This document shows positions 4,282 to 14,115 of a stretch of DNA of 64,000 nucleotides, in pieces. The translations under genes and the position numbers were made by a program. Under the pieces are notes generated by a model. It made no database searches. It was not told where the DNA came from and was given only the letters and a program-made list of their open reading frames with translations. Position 1 is the stretch's first letter, and every line of letters starts with the position of its first letter. Source of the stretch: Bugula neritina. Taxonomy: Eukaryota > Animalia > Bryozoa. The DNA is taken from assembly GCA_964035545.1 (NCBI GenBank), contig OZ037769.1, positions 14,724,633 to 14,788,632 on the forward strand, read 5' to 3'.

Positions 4282-7200
4282 CTAAAAGTCATCTTGTCTT
4301 TTGTGGCCATTAAACCCAGGAAACAGGTAAAGTTTTCTCATATGAGTGAGAGTATCCCAGACTACAACCAACTGTCCTCCACTCTCTAAATTTTTATCTA
4401 AACACAGTTTTCTAACTTTAGTCTGTACCTGAAGAATATTAGGCAAATAAACAGTAAAATTTTATTACTATTCTATACCAGATTATTCTAAATAACCAAT
4501 ACCTTCACTATAACAATACCTACACTATAACAATACCTTCACTATAACAATACCTACACTATAACAATACCTACACTATAACAATACCTTCACTATAACA
4601 ATACCTTCACTATAACAATACCTACACTATAACAATACCTTCACTATAACAATACCTACACTATAACAATACCTACACTATAACAATACCTACACTATAA
4701 CAATACCTTCACTATAACAATACCTTCACTATAACAATACCTACACTATAACAATACCTTCACTATAACAATACCTACACTATAACAATACCTACACTAT
4801 AACAATACCTTCACTATAACAATACCTACACTATAACAATACCTACACTATAACAATATCTTCACTGTAACAATATCTACACTATAACAATACCTACACT
4901 ATAACAATACCTTCACTATAACAATACCTTCACTATAACAATATAACAATACCTACACTATAACAATACCTACACTATAACAATACTTTCACTATAACAA
5001 TACCGTCACTATAACAATATAACAATACCTACACTATAACAATACCTACACTATAACAATACCTACACTATAACAATACTTTCACTATAACAATACCTAC
5101 ACTATAACAATACCTACACTATAACAATACCTTCACTATAACAATACCTTCACTATAACAATACCTTCGCTATAACAATACCTTCACTATAACAATACCT
5201 ACACTATAACAAAATTAAACTGTGAATACTCTATAACAAACTGTAAAATAATTATCAATATTTACTCCTAAAATTAGTAACGTTTGCCAACAACTAACAT
5301 TAATTTGTGCCATTTTCAATTTCATCAGTTCTCCATGCGTATAAGTGTAACAAAGTGCAATACATTCACCTGTTTAAATATGGTGTAGAGGTCATGGTGG
5401 CAGGCATGTTTATACATGGAGGATACAAGAGCTCTAACCATTAGAGATCCACACTCAGGGTGACTTTTTGATATGAATGCTACAAGCAGAATCAATCATA
5501 TAAATTATTCAACTATTAGAAATACAACTAGTTGACTAGTTATACAGTATAATATCATGAATACAGTAACTTGAATTCCATTACATGTGTGTTACTTACA
5601 CTCCATGCTAGATTTCACTACTAGCAGGTCATCATAGTTCAGTCTATTCATAGCCTCAGCATTTTTGTCTCCTGGAACTTTAGCAAGTGGAGGTGAGATA
5701 CTCTCCCCCTCCTTTTGTGATTCTCCAATATCAAACCTGTCTATACCTCTTTGGCCAAAATCACTCCTCTCTGTTAGAAACATAATAAAAAAAGATTATA
5801 TTCACTTCATATGATAAACATCAACAGTGTCAAATATGTAAGAGTTAATATAAATAATTGTGAAACTGGTTGTAAGTGAACATACTTCACCAAATACTCA
5901 ACAGTCAAGGGAACACATTCGAAAGTAACCACAAATGTTTTATAAACTGATTACCTCCACTACAAACTTCCAGTATAACAACCTTTGGTTTGCCAGCCAT
6001 TCCAGAGAAGTTCAAAGGGGTCAGAAGGTCATACACATCTGTTAGTTTAACTCGTTTCAAGTCTGTACCCAAGATGTAGTTGTTCAGCCCTCCATGAGTC
6101 ATGATAACCAACACATGACATCCCAAATCTTTGTGTTCCTCTTTTTTCACCTCAGATTTTACAGCAGACAACATCTCCTAAAACAGGAAGTGAAATATTG
6201 AAATTTGGATGGCAGAAATCCGATCTAAATTTGAAAGCTTCTTTAAAATTTATGACAACTCCTACTAGGTCTTTGAAAATTTAGCTAAACTAAAGTCACA
6301 TGAGGTGAAGAAATAACTTTTAAATCTCATTTACTTTAAACTCAATTTAATAATTTATGTTAAAGTAAAGACTTTGGCATTAATCAGTGCCAGTAAAACT
6401 ATTAATAAGCCAATTCTATTATAGAATATAAACTCATTCCTATTCTTAAGTCAAAATTAATAATAATAATAATCATGATATAACTCATTTGACTTGTTTA
6501 CTTTAAATAACATTTTATTTGAAGATGATTATTTATTAAATGGTCAACAAATGATGCTGGATTAACCCTCCAATTCAGTCTCCAGAGGCCTCAACAAAAA
6601 ACCTGGCCTTACACCTGTGAATCCTTACACCTGTAAACCCAGCCTTACACCTGTAAACCTTTACACCTGTAAACCTTTACACCTGTAAACCTTTACACCT
6701 GTAAACCTTTACACCTGTAAACCTTTACACCTGTAAATCTTTACACCTGTAAACCCTTACACCTCTAAACCCGTCCTTACACCTGCATGTAAACCCTTAT
6801 ACCAGGGGTGGGCAAATGGCGACCCACGGGCCACATCAGCCCCTCTTACTGTTTTAATCAGGCCTTCAGCCAATCACTAGCAATTCTAATATTTTCATTG
6901 GTTTTTTAATCATTCACAAAATGTGTGTACTAAGCAACACTGACCAATCATGAACGTGACTCATGAGAAGATTCTTGCCAATGTATATAGCTGTTAAAAC
7001 TAATGATCACGCTTCAGTTAGCGTAAGTATAGCAGCATTACAACTATAGTTATGTGATGTTGCTGAAACAGCAGTTAGCTTCTACACTTCACCAGTAACC
7101 AGTGAGAAATACCCTACATTAGCTAAACTGGGACTAAGAGCACTGGGCATATTTAGTTATAATTGAAGATTCGAATGCATGTTTTCTAGCATGAACCATA

Positions 7201-8289
7201 CAAAAAATAGTAATATGATCAATGAGCATCTGCAAGATTTGCTTCGAGTAGCCACACATGAACCCATTACAAGCAGTGACATTATTAATAGTGCTAATTG
7301 CTATTATGGCTACTAAAAGTGTATTTCATACTTCTCACTAATTATAGTACTATAAGTGTACCCAATAAACTTTTTGCTGCTTTTTTGCTTAGCGTAGGGC
7401 CACACTGTGCGTAATTTTGCAGGCGAAAACTTAAACCACAGGTAGAAAAGGCGTCCACTGCATGTATGCGTTGAAAAAATTATTGGAATTTGTCGCTCAG
7501 CATTTTGAACGCAAGTTCGAATCGTCTGTCGTCGCCACCTAATTGGCTGGTAGTTATTTAAAGAGCCCACTTTTCTTGATTTAGTGCTACATTCCAGTAG
7601 GTTGCATTTTATTGAAATCGAGTGCGATTTAAAAATGAAAACTCAATTTATCCAGCAGGTGTAGCCATAGCAACAAGGCGATCGGTAAAGTTAAACGCAA
7701 ATATTATTAGCTAGTAGTTTTTTGATTTCACTGATGCTACAGTGGACGCCTTTTCTACTTGTGGTTTAAATTTTTGCCTGCGGAAATGCGCACAGTGTGG
7801 CCTTAGGCTTAGTGAACTATATACAATTTGTTGGTAAATTGATAAACTGCCATATCTTTTATTCTTTATTTATACCCTCAGCTTTGAAAAAAGCAACTTA
7901 TATTTGCATTTGGTAATGCAGCATTGTATATCTTGAATTTACAGCAAACAAACCTGGCCTTTTTTACGCCTTAAATCTTGAGATCTGGCCCTATTTCAAA
8001 AACATTTGCCCATCCCTGCTTTACACCGCGTATTCTGTATACATATAGGCCTATAGAGTCTGTAAACTAACAGAGAAGTAGGTTTTTAACTTCATACGTG
8101 AACAACAACAAAACATACCTCAGCCTTCAGGTCTGTGTGTGTCACAACATCAAACTTGAGAGTTTTCAACATGGTGGACAAATTCTCTACATCCACATCT
8201 GAACCTTTCCTACACAAGTCGGGTCTCTTATCAAAGTTCATGTTGTTTATCATCAGAGCTCTTCCTCTTTTTCTAGTCATAGTAAATAC
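4282..8289 (-). CDS. Caspase (peptidase C14A) domain exons of the fusion gene
   Basis: p20: RGRALMINNMNF...CRKGSDVDVENLSTMLKTLKFDV, catalytic His in VIMTHG, GKPKVVILEVCSG at the QACxG position. p10: DDLLVVKSS...SFISKSHPECGSLMVRAL...QLVVVWDTLTHMRKLYLFPG, matching the caspase C-terminal TLxKxLYF motif. The last two exons (5479-5370, 4428-4282) are absent from the ORF track and were translated by hand. Confidence 0.92.
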
Positions 8290-11104
8290 CTGGATGGAAC
8301 AGAGAAACACTTGTTACTGGTGAACTAAACAACTGGCAAGGATAAATTAGACATTAGACATTAGACATTAAAAGTGATCACCTTGTCGGTATTTGAGAAC
8401 AGCTGTCGTATCTTCCGGTTATTGCTAGGATTCAGTGTGAGTCTTATAAACTTCATATTTTCAACTTCCGCTCTATCTGGGTACAGTTGCTCATCATCAT
8501 CAGAGAGATCACTGAGATCATCATTGGCTGTTATTGTGGAGGTCGGGAGATTTGATTGGCTACTGTTGGCAACTATATAAAGGACAAATTCATATCTCAT
8601 CATGGAATATAGGAAATGTGATATCACAATGATCGGCAAATTGGGACTCAGCTGCAATGTAGTAATATACGTTCATTACTTTACCAAATAAAGTTAAACT
8701 TTTAAAGAACATATTCTTGCACAAACTAGTAACTTGGTATTCACCAGAATTATAAGCTGATCTTCTTTGAACTCCTCGAAGACTCAGTTCACTCACAAAC
8801 TTCTCCAACTTATCAGCTTCTCTCTCAGACAATCTTTCACCTGAAATGTTGAAATACTTGAAAATATAATAAATAATTTCATCGTGCAATTTTTTTCTAG
8901 CCCTAATTATACCAAGGAATGTGGAGGATTAACTCAATTCAATTCTAAATAATGTGGTAAGTTGCAATGAAATAAAAGTTATTACACGCACTACACCATA
9001 ATGTAACCAAACATACATGGATAGAGAAGAGCACTTGGTATCTCCTCATCACCACACAGAGTAGTTGCAGATAAGTTACACAGTTTGGGCTTTGGCGTGG
9101 AATGTTTCAAGGAGCGAAGACACCACGGAGGATGGAGTACTTTCTTAGGACATGGAAGTCCTAGCAGAAGGCAGTGAGCACAGTAGCATGTAGTGACTGG
9201 TCTACTTGCTTTCCAGGTTTCTAGAACATGTCTAAGGATGTTGTTGTTGGTGGTGATGAGTCTCTCCCACATTCCGCTGATGTTGGCAGCATTAGATGAC
9301 ACGTGGAGTGACACTTTTCTAGATTTGTAGTCATGTACCAGCTGTGTGTAGATTCCATCTTGATAGACATTGGCTCCGTTTCTTCTCACTTTCATCACAG
9401 CAAACTCATCTGGAAACGATTCCAACAAACCGACCGTCATCTGGTGGTAGACATATTGTGGCAGGGCTAGACCATTGAACTGTGTCTCCACTTGAAGCAA
9501 CATGTCCTTGGGTGAGGAGTAGGAGGTGCTGTGGTAGTTTTTAGCATACTGAGGTACAATGAACCATGGCTCTTCAGACTCGCCATGTATTGGACCGTGC
9601 AGCAAACGAAATGTCTGGAGTAAGCAGACAGCAACATCTACATCCTTAGAGCTACGGAATGATGTCTCTTTTTCAATGAAATAAAAAAGAAGTGACTGCA
9701 TCATTAAACCAGTGTCAGTGAAATTACTGACAGACCTCTCAAAGTCTTGCTTCTCAAAACGTAGTTCAGTTTGTGTATAGTATGGCTGGAACTGGTCAAC
9801 TCTACTCTGCCATATGTTAGGATCATGATGATACAAGACACATAGAAGTTTGGTGATTCCTGAAATCTTGTGGAATATGTATGGCCGGAGGGAGTTGATG
9901 TCTTTATACCACAAGACTTTGCCGCAGTCATGCATGTATGTGAGGATTATGTCCAGCTGACCTGACTCAATGTGTTGAAGTTCTGTTTGTACGTACTTTA
10001 GTGTCTCATCAAAGGTACTGTACACAGAGGGAAAGGACAGCACTTTTTCATTCACTTCCTCCCAGACAAAAGGTAAAGGTTTCAAGAAATGTTGACTGCT
10101 TTGAAGAAGAGACTTCTTGATCAGGTCAAACACCTCATACTTATCATCCTTTCCCAGCTCATAAATGTCCTCACCAAGAAAGACTCCTCCGGCTGATTCA
10201 CTCAAATGTTTGATTCGAGCAAATTCTCCACCCAATGCTTCCTCTTCCCTAATCATCTCCTCACACAGTTTATTTGAAGTTTCTAGGAAGCTTTTCTGAA
10301 ACTGTTGGAATTCTGCACTCTGAAACTTATCTTTATGTGTGAAGATAAGTTTTGGTGAACCTAGAGTTGGGTTAGCCAGGTAGAGGTGAGACATGTAATC
10401 AAAGGCTAATCTTCTGACAGCTTCTCTGGGTGTTGATTCAATTGAAATCTCTTTGTATTGTTCCATGTTGACTACTATGACTGGAATGCAGTTCTGTCTC
10501 AGTGTCAGTTGATAGGTGATATGGTAGACCTCTTGGCCTCCCATATCAATGAGACGGAGTACTGTACCATCCACCTTCACCTCTTCAACATTAAACACTT
10601 TTGTTGTCTCATCGTTCACAGCATCTGGCCCTCTGTTGGTCAGAACTCTCTTTCTGTCAGCATTCTGTAATGTTTCAATTAGACTGGTCTTCCCAGCCAT
10701 TGTATTACCTAGCACAGCTATAGTAGCAAATGGTAGACTTCTACCAGCACCTTTAGCCAAGTCTGTGTAGTATTGTCTCACAGCATCCAGTCCTCTCCTA
10801 CATACTTCTAGTGGAGGAGAGGTGAGAGCATCACAATATCTAACATGCAGTGTGTGAAGTTGAGTTAGCTGTAGTATCTCAGGATCTAAGGATGTCAGGG
10901 AGTAATTAAGAGATATATCCAGTTCCTGCAGACTACTCAGTGAGTACACAGGAGATGGTAACCTGGTGAAGTTGTTGTATGATATGGTCAGTTTCTCTAA
11001 CTTCTGTAGACTCTGCATGCTAATAAATATGAAATATATATTTGAGGTTTCAAAAATGGGGTTTGCACAATAATAAATATTGAAGTTCCATAATACAATT
11101 CATA

Positions 11105-11161
<57 letters not shown>

Positions 11162-14115
11162 AGTGTGCAATGTATTGTATAAAATTTATAGCTCCATTAG
11201 GACTTATAGTCCCAATTATTTAATACAAAAGAGCAGGTAAATGATACAATACATCACTAGGTAGCAGTGGATTGACTACCATTATATTATATTTCAGTAT
11301 AACATCATAATACGTCTCAGTATAATATTATAATATATCTCAGTATAATATTATAATATACCTTAGTATAACGTTATAATATATTTCAGTATAACATCAT
11401 AATACGTCTCAGTATAATATTATAATATATCTCAGTATAATATTATAATATACCTTAGTATAACGTTATAATATATTTCAGTATAACATTATAATATATC
11501 TCAGTATAACATTATAATATAACTCAGTATAACAATCTGTGAGAGTTTCATAATTACAGTTATAAAAATGATTTTTTTGTTAGTTGTCTTCTATTAATTA
11601 ACTTCTCTAAAAAGTTACAATATACAACTCTAATATAAGTATCAATATACTATCATTTTGTAGCAAAAAAATTAATATTTAATAAACTTATTAGAGTAAT
11701 AGGTGAGAAGTTGCCGTACCCTTTCTATCTGAGTATATCTAATAGAATAGAGTGGTTGTCTTATGACATCATATTCACAGAGTCTAGTTGACTCAATAAA
11801 GATAGTGCAGATAACTTCATAATGTATAATATAATACATACCTGTTTGGTAGAATTGGAAGTTTACAGTCTCCAATGCCCAACTGTCTCAATGATAGTAA
11901 GGATGTGAATATATTGTCAGGTAGACCTTCAGATAGATTATTCCCTGGTATATCCAATACCTCAAGATTCTTCAGTGAAGATACGCTGTAACATAGCATA
12001 CAGGTGTGAAATGTTGTATATCAAAAAATACCATATGCACTTCTATAACCTCATCATATCTATAAAATATTTATAACTTATACTTATTACAGTACCATTC
12101 TACACTATAATAAAATAATATGCACCTGTTTGGTAGAGTTGACAGTTTACAGTGACTCATGTTCAACTCTCTCAATGATAGTAAGGATGTGAATATATTG
12201 TCAGGTAGACCTTCAGATAGGTTATTCCCTAATATATCCAATACCTCAAGATTCTTCAGTGAAGATATGCTGTAATATAACACATAGGTGTGAAATGTTG
12301 TATATCAAAATATACCTTATACACTTCTACATAATCATATCTATAATATATTTATAACTTATACTTATTACAGTACCATTCTACAATATGATGTAATACA
12401 CACACACCTGTTTGGTAGAGTTGGTAGTTCACAGTAATTCATGTCCAACTCTCTCAATGATAGTAAGGATGTGAATATATTGTCAGGTAGACCTTCAGAT
12501 AGGTTCTTCCCTGATATATCCAATACCTCAAGATTCTTCAGTGAAGATATGCTGTTACATAACACAAAGGTGTGAAATGTTGTAAATAAAAAATACCATA
12601 TACTTCTACCCAATCATATCAACAATATATTTATAACTTATACTTATTACAACACCATTCTACAATATAATATAACACACACACACACCTGTTTGGTAGA
12701 GTTGGTAGTTTACAGTACATCATGTCCAACTCTCTCAATGATAATAAGGATGTGAATATATTGTCAGGTAGACCTTCAGATAGGTTATTATATGATATAT
12801 TCAATACCTCAAGATTCTTCAGTGAAGATATGCTGTAATATAACACACATGCAGGTGTGACAGTATTCAACTCTATAATATAATTGTCACATATTAGTAT
12901 GTTTGAATGAGATTAACTGACATTAAATTGAATAATAAATAGAAATGCAATAAACCAGGTAAATAATACAACAGTTGTTACTAAAGCTAGTGTTATTGTG
13001 AGGGGAGATTACTCCACATTCTACTACAAGATGATATGTCACTTATTATTAAATATAGTTTTATATTATCATGCAACATTAGTATACCTGGTCCAGTCAA
13101 CATTACTGTCTACTCCAGATACCCTCAGATATGTGAGATGAGGAAACAGTTTGTTGATATTTGGAGGAATGTCATCATCCAGTCTAACATGAGTAACTGT
13201 ATGGTGTCTACTTTTATCTTTGATCTCACCTATAGTGTAGGATGTAGTCCTATTCCTCATCCACTCATCACCAGTTCCATCTATAATGGATGTGTTGAAC
13301 CACACCCTATACTTCTCTACAAAATATGCACCACTATATGAATAGTAACATGGATATCAAATAACAAAATATATGTCTCAACACTATATAAACAGTATTG
13401 AATTAATTAACTTTGCATGGTTCTGTACAGCACGCGTTATAATAATTATGTTATAATTAGTCATAGAGTAGGCTATAATATAATGTAATATAATATAATG
13501 TATAATAGAGTATGATATAAGTTAGTCTAATAGTTATAGAATATAGTATAATATAAGTCAGTATAATAGTTATATACATTATACTCAGTATATAACATTA
13601 TAAAATGAACACAAGCAATGTAATACTCAGCTGGTATCAAAACAGTGGTAGGTGCAGTAATGAAAAAAGTGAAAAAAGCCTGTGCTTCTAGATCAGAAAT
13701 GTAGCAAAAGAAGTTGTATTTTCATGAGAATTTAAACAGGATAAAATTTAAAGAATTTAAGCTATCTCAGTTTCTCCACTATTGCACCATATTTTCAGAA
13801 CATAAAAATATATAATTTCTGTAGTCACTATAGTTGCAGTATTTGTAATCACATGGTTTACTAACTTATCAGAGACTGACCTGAAGATAGAGGTGGTGGT
13901 TGAGGTGGTGGTTGAAGTGGTGGTTGAAGTGGAGGTGGAGGTTGAGGTGGCGGTGGAGGTTGAGGTGGAGGTTGAGGTTGAAATGGAGGTGGAAGTGGAG
14001 GTGGAAGTAGAGGTGGACCTGGAGGTGTAGGTTGAGGGACAGACTTGCGTTGACCCATTCTGTAGTCTCTGGGTACAGCTATACTCACATCTTTATTCTC
14101 ATCTGTAACAACCAT
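4282..14115 (-). CDS. Pro-rich-LRR-ROC-COR-caspase fusion protein (Roco-family GTPase with C-terminal peptidase C14 domain), about 1383 aa
   Basis: Coding exons (minus strand): 14115-13881, 13316-13088, 12832-12689, 12551-12408, 12269-12126, 11985-11842, 11019-9017, 8840-8745, 8572-8382, 8289-8119, 6177-5955, 5770-5600, 5479-5370, 4428-4282 (14 segments in this list, counting the four LRR cassettes separately). Every intron is GT-AG with matching phase (1,2,2,2,2,2,1,1,0,0,1,1,0). Total 4152 nt = 1384 codons ending in TAG. Domain motifs are given in the sub-features. Confidence 0.85.
4497..5210. repeat. 17-bp minisatellite (ACTATAACAATACCT[A/T]C), about 40 copies, in last intron of the fusion gene
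   Basis: Direct head-to-tail tandem units with two alternating variants and no spacers. Confidence 0.95.
6608..6790. repeat. 16-bp minisatellite (ACACCTGTAAACCTTT)
   Basis: About 10 tandem, partly degenerate copies immediately left of the hAT element. Confidence 0.9.
6803..8018 (+). mobile_element. Non-autonomous hAT (Buster/Charlie-like) DNA transposon in a caspase intron
   Basis: TIRs CAGGGGTGGGCAAATG (6803) and CATTTGCCCATCCCTG (ends 8018) match 15/16. Flanking 8-mers CCTTATAC and CTTTACAC match 6/8. The internal remnant at ~7100-7255 translates as SEKYPTLAKLGLRALGIFSYN*RFECMFSSMNHTKN...NEHLQDLLRVAT, resembling the hAT C-terminal dimerisation domain. Confidence 0.8.
7392..7808. mobile_element. 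PIF/Harbinger-type MITE nested inside the hAT element
   Basis: About 70-bp imperfect TIRs (GCGTAGGGCCACACTGTGCG...AGAAAAGGCGTCCACTG and CAGTGGACGCCTTTTCT...CGCACAGTGTGGCCTTAGGC), flanked by TTA at 7389-7391 and 7809-7811. Confidence 0.8.
9017..11019 (-). CDS. Large exon encoding last LRRs, ROC GTPase and COR domain
   Basis: LRRs (LEKLTISYNNF, LQELDISLN, LHTLHVRYC), Roco hinge LTSPPLEVCRRGLDAVRQYY, P-loop GNTMAGKTSL, switch Thr (DETTKV), G3 DMGGQE, G4 THKD, COR motifs LPFVWEEV, LTYMHDCGKVLWY, WFIVP, LPQYVYHQM, and a C-terminal CYCAHC cluster. Confidence 0.92.
11107..11158. repeat. (TA)n microsatellite
   Basis: Pure TA run. Confidence 0.95.
11281..11533. repeat. 23-bp minisatellite (CAGTATAAYATTATAATATATCT) with a 92-bp higher-order duplication
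   Basis: Variant CAGTATAACATCATAATACGTCT recurs at 11295 and 11387, a spacing of 4 x 23 bp. Confidence 0.85.
11842..11985 (-). CDS. LRR cassette exon D (144 nt, phase 2-2)
   Basis: tacag|...AG|gtatgt; encodes SVSSLKNLEVLDIPGNNLSEGLPDNIFTSLLSLRQLGIGDCKLPILPN. Confidence 0.9.
12126..12269 (-). CDS. LRR cassette exon C (144 nt, phase 2-2)
   Basis: tacag|...AG|gtgcat; encodes SISSLKNLEVLDILGNNLSEGLPDNIFTSLLSLRELNMSHCKLSTLPN. Confidence 0.9.
12408..12551 (-). CDS. LRR cassette exon B (144 nt, phase 2-2)
   Basis: aacag|...AG|gtgtgt; encodes SISSLKNLEVLDISGKNLSEGLPDNIFTSLLSLRELDMNYCELPTLPN. Confidence 0.9.
12689..12832 (-). CDS. LRR cassette exon A (144 nt, two LRRs, phase 2-2)
   Basis: tacag|C ATA TCT...CCA AAC AG|gtgtgt; encodes SISSLKNLEVLNISYNNLSEGLPDNIFTSLLSLRELDMMYCKLPTLPN. 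Confidence 0.9.
13881..14115 (-). CDS. First coding exon of the fusion gene, polyproline-rich
   Basis: ATG at 14115 lies just downstream of an acceptor (tgtttag, ~14134). Encodes MVVTDENKDVSIAVPRDYRMGQRKSV followed by a ~50-aa P/Q/L tract. Donor TCA G|gtcagt is phase 1 and in frame with exon 13316-13088. Confidence 0.7.

Follow-up and report, generated by a model that had tools for sequence, protein, structure and literature searches.

A Bugula neritina gene predicted to encode leucine-rich repeats, a Roc-COR switch and a caspase in one chain

In the cell-death and inflammasome platforms so far known from animals, caspases are gathered by STAND ATPases and death-fold adaptors; the apoptosome (Apaf-1/caspase-9) and the inflammasomes (NLRC4 or NLRP, ASC and caspase-1) combine such an ATPase with CARD, DED or PYD adaptors. 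Roc GTPases with COR are found in the Roco proteins, among which a review distinguishes those with leucine-rich repeats (LRRs), Roc and COR only, those bearing a kinase, and DAPK1, with a protease in none of these groups (PMC6337361), and in Aplysia Roco proteins fused to TIR and to Death domains are on record (PMC9334734). In bacteria, LRR-AP-GTPase(Roc)-COR proteins with a C-terminal caspase have been described for conflict systems (Kaur, Iyer, Burroughs, Aravind 2021, eLife, PMC8195603). Here we report on a 64,000-nucleotide (nt) stretch of the genome of the bryozoan Bugula neritina (contig OZ037769.1, positions 14,724,633 to 14,788,632 of the forward strand; hereafter the window), in which positions 14115 to 4282 on the minus strand very probably constitute one gene for a cytosolic protein of 1383 amino acids (aa) that carries LRRs, Roc, COR, a linker and a caspase in one chain.

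The protein shares the succession of LRRs and Roc-COR with the group-1 Roco proteins (MFHAS1/MASL1; C. tepidum 6hlu, 3dpu and 3dpt), but those end after COR, whereas the chain described here goes on through an acidic linker to a caspase. LRRK1 and LRRK2 also join LRRs, Roc-COR and a C-terminal enzyme in one chain and have a THxD-type G4 motif; their effector is, however, a kinase accompanied by WD40 and ankyrin/armadillo repeats, in place of which a caspase without such repeats is found here, and they occur in one or two copies, against at least 66 in the present family. DAPK1 (group-3 Roco) likewise ties Roc-COR to cell death, but its kinase is N-terminal, it carries ankyrin repeats together with a death domain, and it lacks LRRs and a protease (PMC6337361). 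The bacterial proteins have the same domain order, with fast-evolving LRRs, a variable effector and possibly several paralogues per genome (PMC8195603), but they are intron-less and carry caspase-superfamily domains, whereas the caspase of the present protein is of the usual animal C14A type, made up of p20 and p10. With the apoptosome and the inflammasomes the presumed common principle is a sensor, a switch and induced proximity; in contrast to those platforms, the switch here is a Roc GTPase, the caspase is covalently attached and its S1 pocket is non-canonical.

Gene structure and the Roc-COR-to-caspase junction

The gene model comprises 14 minus-strand exons (14115 to 4282) in a window of AT-rich eukaryotic DNA (GC 28-43%). 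When it was recomputed exon by exon, a single reading frame was kept throughout, all introns were GT..AG, no in-frame stop was present in the exons or split codons, and the summed coding length was 4152 nt, that is, 1383 codons plus a TAG stop. The original prediction had joined 9017 to 8840, 8572 and 8289 in one frame to give 1383 aa, and this was reproduced exactly: the donor at 9017 (CCA T, then GTATGT) is followed by a 176-nt intron, and the acceptors lie at 8840, 8572 and 8289. The domain order is a Pro-rich N-terminus, a family-specific exon, about 11 LRRs, Roc, COR-A/COR-B, a Cys/His tail, an acidic linker of about 95 aa and a C14A caspase (p20 and p10). The exons (E1 to E14; window coordinates) are as follows.

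13881-14115, minus strand: E1, putative start codon (ATG 14115) and Pro-rich N-terminus with PPxQ repeats
13088-13316, minus strand: E2, family-specific N-terminal exon before the LRR array; AG/GT borders, phase 1
12832-12689, minus strand: E3, LRR cassette exon of 144 nt; phase 2 to 2, 48 aa
12551-12408, minus strand: E4, LRR cassette exon of 144 nt; phase 2 to 2, 48 aa
12269-12126, minus strand: E5, LRR cassette exon of 144 nt; phase 2 to 2, 48 aa
11985-11842, minus strand: E6, LRR cassette exon of 144 nt; phase 2 to 2, 48 aa
11019-9017, minus strand: E7, last three or so LRRs, Roc, COR-A, COR-B and Cys/His-rich tail; 2003 nt
8840-8745, minus strand: E8, linker exon 1; 31 full codons, no Met, phase 1 to 1
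8572-8382, minus strand: E9, linker exon 2; acidic SDLSDDDE..YPD, then ..KIRQLFSNTDK just ahead of p20
8289-8119, minus strand: E10, start of caspase p20; Peptidase_C14
6177-5955, minus strand: E11, remainder of p20 with catalytic His and Cys; Peptidase_C14
5770-5600, minus strand: E12, intersubunit linker and start of p10; spliced joints on both sides
5479-5370, minus strand: E13, p10 core with ISKSHP, placed by alignment to caspase-1 p10 and Watersipora
4428-4282, minus strand: E14, end of p10 (..MRKLYLFPGF..); phase 0, single terminal stop TAG at 4282-4284

Pfam, PDB and fold searches were each made per exon, not on the joined 1383-aa model; with Pfam, E1, E2, E8, E9, E12, E14 and the Cys/His tail of E7 gave no match. 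E1 is low-complexity and Pro-rich and holds a 12/18/30-nt tandem repeat; in-frame stops lie upstream of its ATG at 14115, and a GT donor follows 13881.

The fusion of E7 to the caspase is backed by four independent lines of evidence, namely RNA contigs, the E7 donor, the linker exons and the genomes of other animals, which together bear out the earlier claim that LRRs, Roc, COR and a p20-p10 caspase lie in one polypeptide with no separate caspase gene. In the RNA-type runs X2, X3 and X5 the exons checked are covered by contigs, whereas depth is zero or near zero over introns 7 and 8 and much of intron 10. Contigs of these runs join 9017 to 8840 with GT-AG borders (X5), 8119 to 6177 (X2, X3 and X5), 5955 to 5770 (X5, shorter side 94 nt) and 5600 to 5479 (X2 and X3), and the intron between E9 and E10 appears in RNA-type contigs as a 92-nt skip. 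In X3, a 51-nt loose end at 9016 is identical to what directly follows the E8-type acceptor in paralogues L011, L014 and L019, and therefore represents the spliced E7-E8 junction of a sister gene.

The remaining lines bear on a two-gene alternative, in which an MFHAS1-like LRR-Roc-COR protein would end at a stop at 8991, a short-prodomain caspase would start from a Met in E9 or E10, and the fusion would be an artefact or a rare read-through. The E7 frame does meet a stop just 8 codons past the donor, and in-frame Met codons are present in E9 (..ENMKF..) and E10 (VFTMTRK). However, the position of the donor is the same to the codon in 30 of 30 paralogues (its sequence being GTATGT, GTACGT, GTGAGT or GTAAGT), whereas the tail beyond it diverges among paralogues in both length and sequence, its read-through frame stopping after 4-45 codons. 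E8 is open and keeps its AG/GT borders in seven paralogues, where it measures 93 nt against 96 nt here, a difference of exactly 3 nt; it cannot start a protein because it has no Met and its phase 1 entry is supplied only by the E7 donor. E9 (191 nt) keeps AG/GT and is open in all 14 paralogues aligned, and AG/GT borders and an open frame are likewise kept in E10 and E11 (7-14 paralogues for the E9-E11 set). Since exon order, donor and phases recur in up to 30 paralogues, the gene structure is beyond chance. With one-chain RefSeq models in two other genera, to whose internal linker E9 is homologous in Watersipora, and with the RNA contig that joins a paralogue's E7 to its E8, we regard the two-gene arrangement as very improbable. 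Chimeric mis-assembly was considered separately and rejected, as dozens of loci show this order with this spacing.

The other-genus models come first from the bryozoan Watersipora subatra, which holds the nearest annotated relatives of the gene. Two RefSeq models, XP_067947674.1 (1419 aa) and XP_067948342.1 (1413 aa), each contain LRRs, a complete Peptidase_C14 and a region that resembles E7 (29-32% identity), and about ten further Watersipora models have the one-chain architecture. About twelve Branchiostoma models (B. floridae, B. belcheri and B. lanceolatum) combine Roc, COR-B (in some also COR-A) and C14, the one-chain B. floridae model being C3XQ16 / XP_002614028.1. The Watersipora and Branchiostoma models thus have the same LRR, Roc, COR and Peptidase_C14 and are 29-38% identical to E7; unlike the protein here, which has Glu, the Watersipora relatives keep Gln at the caspase position Gln283 (QACSG or QACGG).

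Several points weigh against the one-chain reading or against expression of this particular copy. Runs X2, X3 and X5 were classed as RNA by guess only. The joint between 9017 and 8840 is thinly covered, by a single X5 contig with 27 nt on its shorter side, and the depth over E8 is zero in X2 and X3 and 5.5 in X5, both of which would suit two genes. The original prediction had called for junction reads across the linker exons; the 9017-8840 joint and the E9/E10 skip are present in RNA-type contigs, but a contig joint from 8745 to 8572 is not listed for these runs. An isoform that retains intron 7 and ends at the stop at 8991 may exist, as it is compatible with the contigs. No RNA contig covers E1 and its start codon, and E1 is the least certain exon. 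Finally, most RNA-type contigs are only 95-99% alike to the window copy and therefore derive from paralogues. This last point, together with the depth over E8, would also fit a silent or decaying copy, with function confined to its paralogues. We consider such silence highly unlikely: the 14 exons are open with canonical splice sites and intact motifs, some short contigs match window exons exactly (e.g. 5632-5714 and 10722-10786), and 61 of the 66 scored copies of the ROC-COR exon in the genome are free of stops.

The introns contain repeats of their own. In the 1.9-kb intron 10, contig depth over 7434-7821 reaches 15,000-44,000 in X14, a DNA-like run, as well as in the RNA-type X2, which marks a high-copy repeat that is apparently transcribed; ARAGORN finds no tRNA in the window, and this element is therefore not an intact tRNA gene. 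The same intron holds a minisatellite at 6609-6771 (16-nt unit, 10 copies), and another occupies 4492-5212 of the last intron (17-nt unit, 42 copies, 90% matches). Intron 6 contains (TA)27 at 11107-11159 and a 23/92-nt repeat at 11280-11534.

The LRR array and the Roc-COR switch

Exons E3 to E6 each code for two LRRs, have AG/GT borders with a split codon AGC (Ser) at each, and match LRR_4, LRR_8 and LRR_1 of Pfam. E7 also has LRR matches, and the array amounts to about 11 LRRs, eight on the four duplicated 144-nt cassettes and about three in E7. Cassette exon and intron together form a 281-nt tandem unit present in 3.6 copies with 88% matches (window 11836-12847). Because all cassettes measure 144 nt and run from phase 2 to phase 2, they can be gained or lost without a break of the frame. 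E2 has 56 copies in the genome, and each of those compared precedes a ROC-COR exon of the same strand by 1.5-7 kb; since this distance varies among paralogues, they probably differ in the number of LRR cassettes.

Within E7, Pfam detects Roc (PF08477) at aa 100-190 with 30.7 bits against a cut-off of 27. The following motifs were located.

10686-10709, minus strand: Roc P-loop GNTMAGKT, aa 104-111 of E7
10533-10547, minus strand: Roc switch II DMGGQ, aa 158-162 of E7
10329-10340, minus strand: Roc G4 THKD, aa 227-230 of E7

Across 45 family sequences G104 is invariant, and G109, K110, D158, G160, G161, T227, H228 and D230 are each at least 90% conserved. The GTP-binding motifs are thus intact, and GTP binding is predicted from them; the corresponding G4 motif of LRRK2 we take to be THLD. 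A single-sequence search of the PDB, which aligned just the LRR and Roc parts of E7, retrieved the Roc regions of C. tepidum Roco, M. barkeri Roco2, LRRK1 and LRRK2. The profile built from 45 sequences aligns to LRRK2 residues 1246-1599, a range that presumably reaches into COR-A.

The COR region was assigned by fold. An AlphaFold2 model of E7 (predicted local distance difference test 88.9, predicted template-modelling score 0.88) was searched with Foldseek and matched dimeric LRRK1 (8e05, E-value 1e-22), the LRR-Roc-COR protein of C. tepidum over about 650 columns (6hlu, E-value 2e-20), many LRRK2 structures (template-modelling score 0.55-0.61 on the query) and the isolated COR domain 3dpt (E-value 6e-10, template-modelling score 0.63-0.65 on the target). 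Sequence identity to the group-1 Roco proteins is 13-16% in the structural alignments. In the modelled structure COR directly follows Roc. What speaks against this assignment is that the Pfam COR-A profile stays below threshold on E7 (14.1 vs 35.3 bits), and the assignment of COR therefore rests on the fold match.

The tail after COR-B (9018-9200; aa ~606-667 of E7) carries the motif YCxHC...C...PC in the 45 sequences; C613 and C616 are invariant, H615 and P624 are nearly so, and further Cys are conserved. No Pfam match was found in the last 160 aa of E7 at E-values up to 1. Placed between COR and the linker, the Cys/His tail may bind a metal as a small module of its own.

The caspase domain and its S1 pocket

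Peptidase_C14 (PF00656) is matched by both E10 (36.6 bits) and E11 (38.2 bits; cut-off 21.4), and their nearest relatives in the PDB are CED-3, an ancestral caspase-3/6/7 and caspases 3, 6, 7 and 8. A metacaspase, paracaspase or orthocaspase was rejected as an identity for the domain, its best relatives being CED-3 and caspases 3, 6, 7 and 8. CRKGSDVD in E10 aligns with TRNGTDKD of the ancestral caspase-3/6/7 and caspase-7, so that Arg27 of E10 (8209-8211) takes the place of the p20 Arg in R-x-G-x-D, which we take to be Arg179 in caspase-1 numbering. In E11, the catalytic His lies at 6094-6096 (THGG, of which THG aligns with SHG) and the catalytic Cys at 5962-5964, where EVCSG aligns with QACRG (CED-3 ..VQACRG, caspase-8, -6 and -3). 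His and Cys are kept in nine of the nine paralogues aligned across E11, with EVCSG or ETCSG in all nine.

In canonical caspases, Arg179, Gln283 and Arg341 (caspase-1 numbering) bind the aspartate at P1. In the present protein Arg179 is kept and the other two of the three are replaced. The Gln283 position is a Glu (5968-5970) because EVCSG stands for QACRG. ISKSHP of E13 aligns with VSWRHP of human caspase-1 p10, giving Trp340 to Lys and Arg341 to Ser, in a weak alignment (E-value 0.03); the Ser codon, at 5463-5465, was read in this copy. The p10 region of E13 is 46-48% identical to Watersipora, and the alignment with the Watersipora model P0045 puts an Arg at the Arg341 position; E14 is 40-45% identical to the C-termini of the Watersipora models P0028 and P0045. 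The domain is a caspase by homology, but, judged by these residues, the classical strict preference for Asp at P1 is probably absent, and since Gln283 is Glu and Arg341 is Ser, cleavage after Asp and Asp-specific autoprocessing are doubtful. The acidic SDLSDDDE that immediately precedes p20 might be cut in processing, which is speculative given this S1 pocket. Of the "complete caspase" of the original prediction, then, the fold and the His/Cys pair hold, whereas the S1 pocket departs from it.

The replacement at Gln283 was followed through the genome with the motif KPK-x4-[E/Q/H]-x-C-x-G, which yielded 31 Glu, 34 Gln and 13 His matches, against 0-1 for reversed-pattern controls. Among the motifs within 8 kb downstream of scored ROC-COR exons, 34 of 36 are of the Glu or His type (Glu 22, His 12, Gln 2); conversely, 32 of the 34 Gln-type motifs are not linked to scored ROC-COR exons. 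By this measure the Roco-linked caspases of this genome have largely replaced a P1-aspartate-binding residue. As the catalytic pair is retained, such a patterned replacement suggests that the specificity has shifted and not that the domain is decaying.

The same substitutions could mean that the domain is inactive or purely regulatory, which counts against its being a working protease. In that case the fusion would be real, but the caspase domain would, as a pseudo-caspase much like c-FLIP, regulate or scaffold conventional caspases by pairing with them in heterodimers. Two of the three P1-Asp-binding residues are replaced and Trp340 is Lys, and the roughly 32 Gln-type motifs unlinked to scored ROC-COR exons are possible partners. 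Against this, His, Cys, THG and CSG are kept in the nine E11 paralogues and in paralogue L018, whereas pseudo-enzymes usually lose such residues, and which residue replaces Gln283, Glu or His, depends on the subfamily, which resembles a specificity change. We therefore think a pseudo-caspase unlikely and retain the reading as a protease of altered specificity.

CARD, DED and PYD were not matched by Pfam in E8, E9 and the last 160 aa of E7 (E-values up to 1), nor in E1, E2 and E12 (E-values up to 0.1), and neither the exons nor the full-length relatives have a NACHT or NB-ARC match. An NLR-type receptor was accordingly rejected, the NTPase being Roc and no STAND domain being present.

Paralogues, novelty and proposed role

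The gene belongs to a large lineage-specific family. In the 216-Mb genome, 66 scored matches to the ROC-COR exon (64-89% identity) were obtained among 162 candidates, which answers the call of the original prediction for a paralogue count with at least 66 scored copies. ROC-COR arrays occur on the genome contigs C1 (33.8-35.1 Mb) and C6 (2.5-6.3 Mb). At least 50 of the 66 exons are followed on the same strand by a Peptidase_C14 within 8 kb (range 0.7-8 kb, mostly 0.7-2.3 kb), a linkage inferred from coordinates on a Peptidase_C14 list that is incomplete and misses even the caspase of the window itself; the motif matches add further linked caspases beyond that list. In paralogues L009, L011, L014, L016-L018, L021, L022 and L028 the ROC-COR exon is 76-84% identical (about 81%) to that of the window, and the caspase exons are 41-46% identical. 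These loci lie at 33.8-34.6 Mb and 3.54 Mb of C1, and L018, with FHACSG, belongs to the His-type subfamily and keeps His and Cys. The combination of similar switch exons with divergent caspase exons means that the protease module comes in distinct subtypes, and the pattern fits either a swapping of protease subtypes or a homogenisation of the switch exon by gene conversion.

One-chain models from other animals sit unremarked in databases under the names "MFHAS1 homolog", "SHOC-2" and "uncharacterized", so this locus is not the only one of its kind, and a prokaryotic counterpart has been described as well. In the literature searched, no paper on an animal Roco-caspase was found, although an earlier mention in Huang et al. 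2008 (amphioxus immune repertoire) is possible. The novelty originally supposed is narrowed accordingly: a characterised animal member was not found in that literature, but the architecture is described for bacteria (PMC8195603), animal models exist in RefSeq and UniProt, and at least 66 copies are present in this genome.

Some of the relatives carry other domains as well. The B. belcheri models P0165, P0173 and P0174 contain Death (PF00531) and a GT4 glycosyltransferase (PF00534, PF13692 and PF20706), and GT4 is an effector in bacterial AP-GTPase systems (Kaur et al. 2021, PMC8195603). P0158, a protein of 1028 aa from a Logan contig, combines ankyrin repeats, a RING-type zinc finger (PF13920) and a Peptidase_C14 whose caspase domain is 30% identical to that of Watersipora.

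We propose that the protein works as a GTP-gated, dimerisation-activated protease of immunity or allorecognition, a statement that, taken as a whole with its mechanism, we hold with moderate confidence. The variable LRR array would sense a ligand or perturbation, and sensing would alter the nucleotide state and conformation of Roc-COR. Dimerisation or oligomerisation through COR would then pair two caspase domains and activate them by proximity, with no need for a separate STAND platform or death-fold adaptor, and the output would be the cleavage of substrates, with cell death or a signal as the consequence, in immunity or in the allorecognition of colonies. Such a mechanism matches the logic that Kaur et al. 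assign to the bacterial LRR-AP-GTPase-COR proteins with a caspase effector (PMC8195603). Every functional element of this scheme is inferred: the sensing of a ligand, the gating by GTP, dimerisation, the activity and specificity of the protease, and the role in the animal. For the adaptor-free, GTP-gated inflammasome analogue of the original prediction, the anatomy fits (GTP motifs, COR fold, His/Cys pair, no CARD or DED), and its operation is put forward by inference only. A two-copy complex prediction for the COR region (aa 300-667 of E7) scored 0.00 and gave no answer either way. What tempers the proposal is that the immune role is argued only by analogy with the expanded NLR and other receptor families.

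A developmental or physiological role would leave the fusion and an active protease in place and assign them to colony cell death (e.g. polypide regression) or stress signalling. Recurrent mass cell death occurs in bryozoan zooids, in vertebrates DAPK1 and LRRK2 have their roles in stress, autophagy and trafficking and do not serve as pattern receptors, and no ligand is known for the present protein, all of which would suit this role. However, at least 66 and up to about 160 arrayed copies, variation in LRR cassettes and swapped protease subtypes typify genes of conflict and recognition, and the bacterial counterparts are assigned to systems that counter invaders (PMC8195603). Because the family is large, arrayed and modular, we favour recognition or conflict over housekeeping death and regard the developmental role as rather unlikely.

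More tentatively still than the mechanism, the Roco-caspases may be a third, unrecognised class of animal death or immune platform, represented in bryozoans by a repertoire of about 100 or more genes that would have been diversified by duplication of LRR cassettes and by swapped non-Asp protease subtypes. Roc-COR, the module mutated in LRRK2 Parkinson's disease, is here wired directly to a caspase. If the proposal is true, animals would possess a second, adaptor-free coupling of sensing to proteolysis, parallel to the bacterial conflict systems, and proteolysis would offer a natural read-out of how nucleotide cycling in Roc-COR controls an attached effector. The patterned replacement of S1 residues is a natural experiment in the evolution of caspase specificity, and the family would give bryozoans, a colonial phylum about whose immune and allorecognition systems little is known, an extensive and as yet unexplored set of recognition genes.

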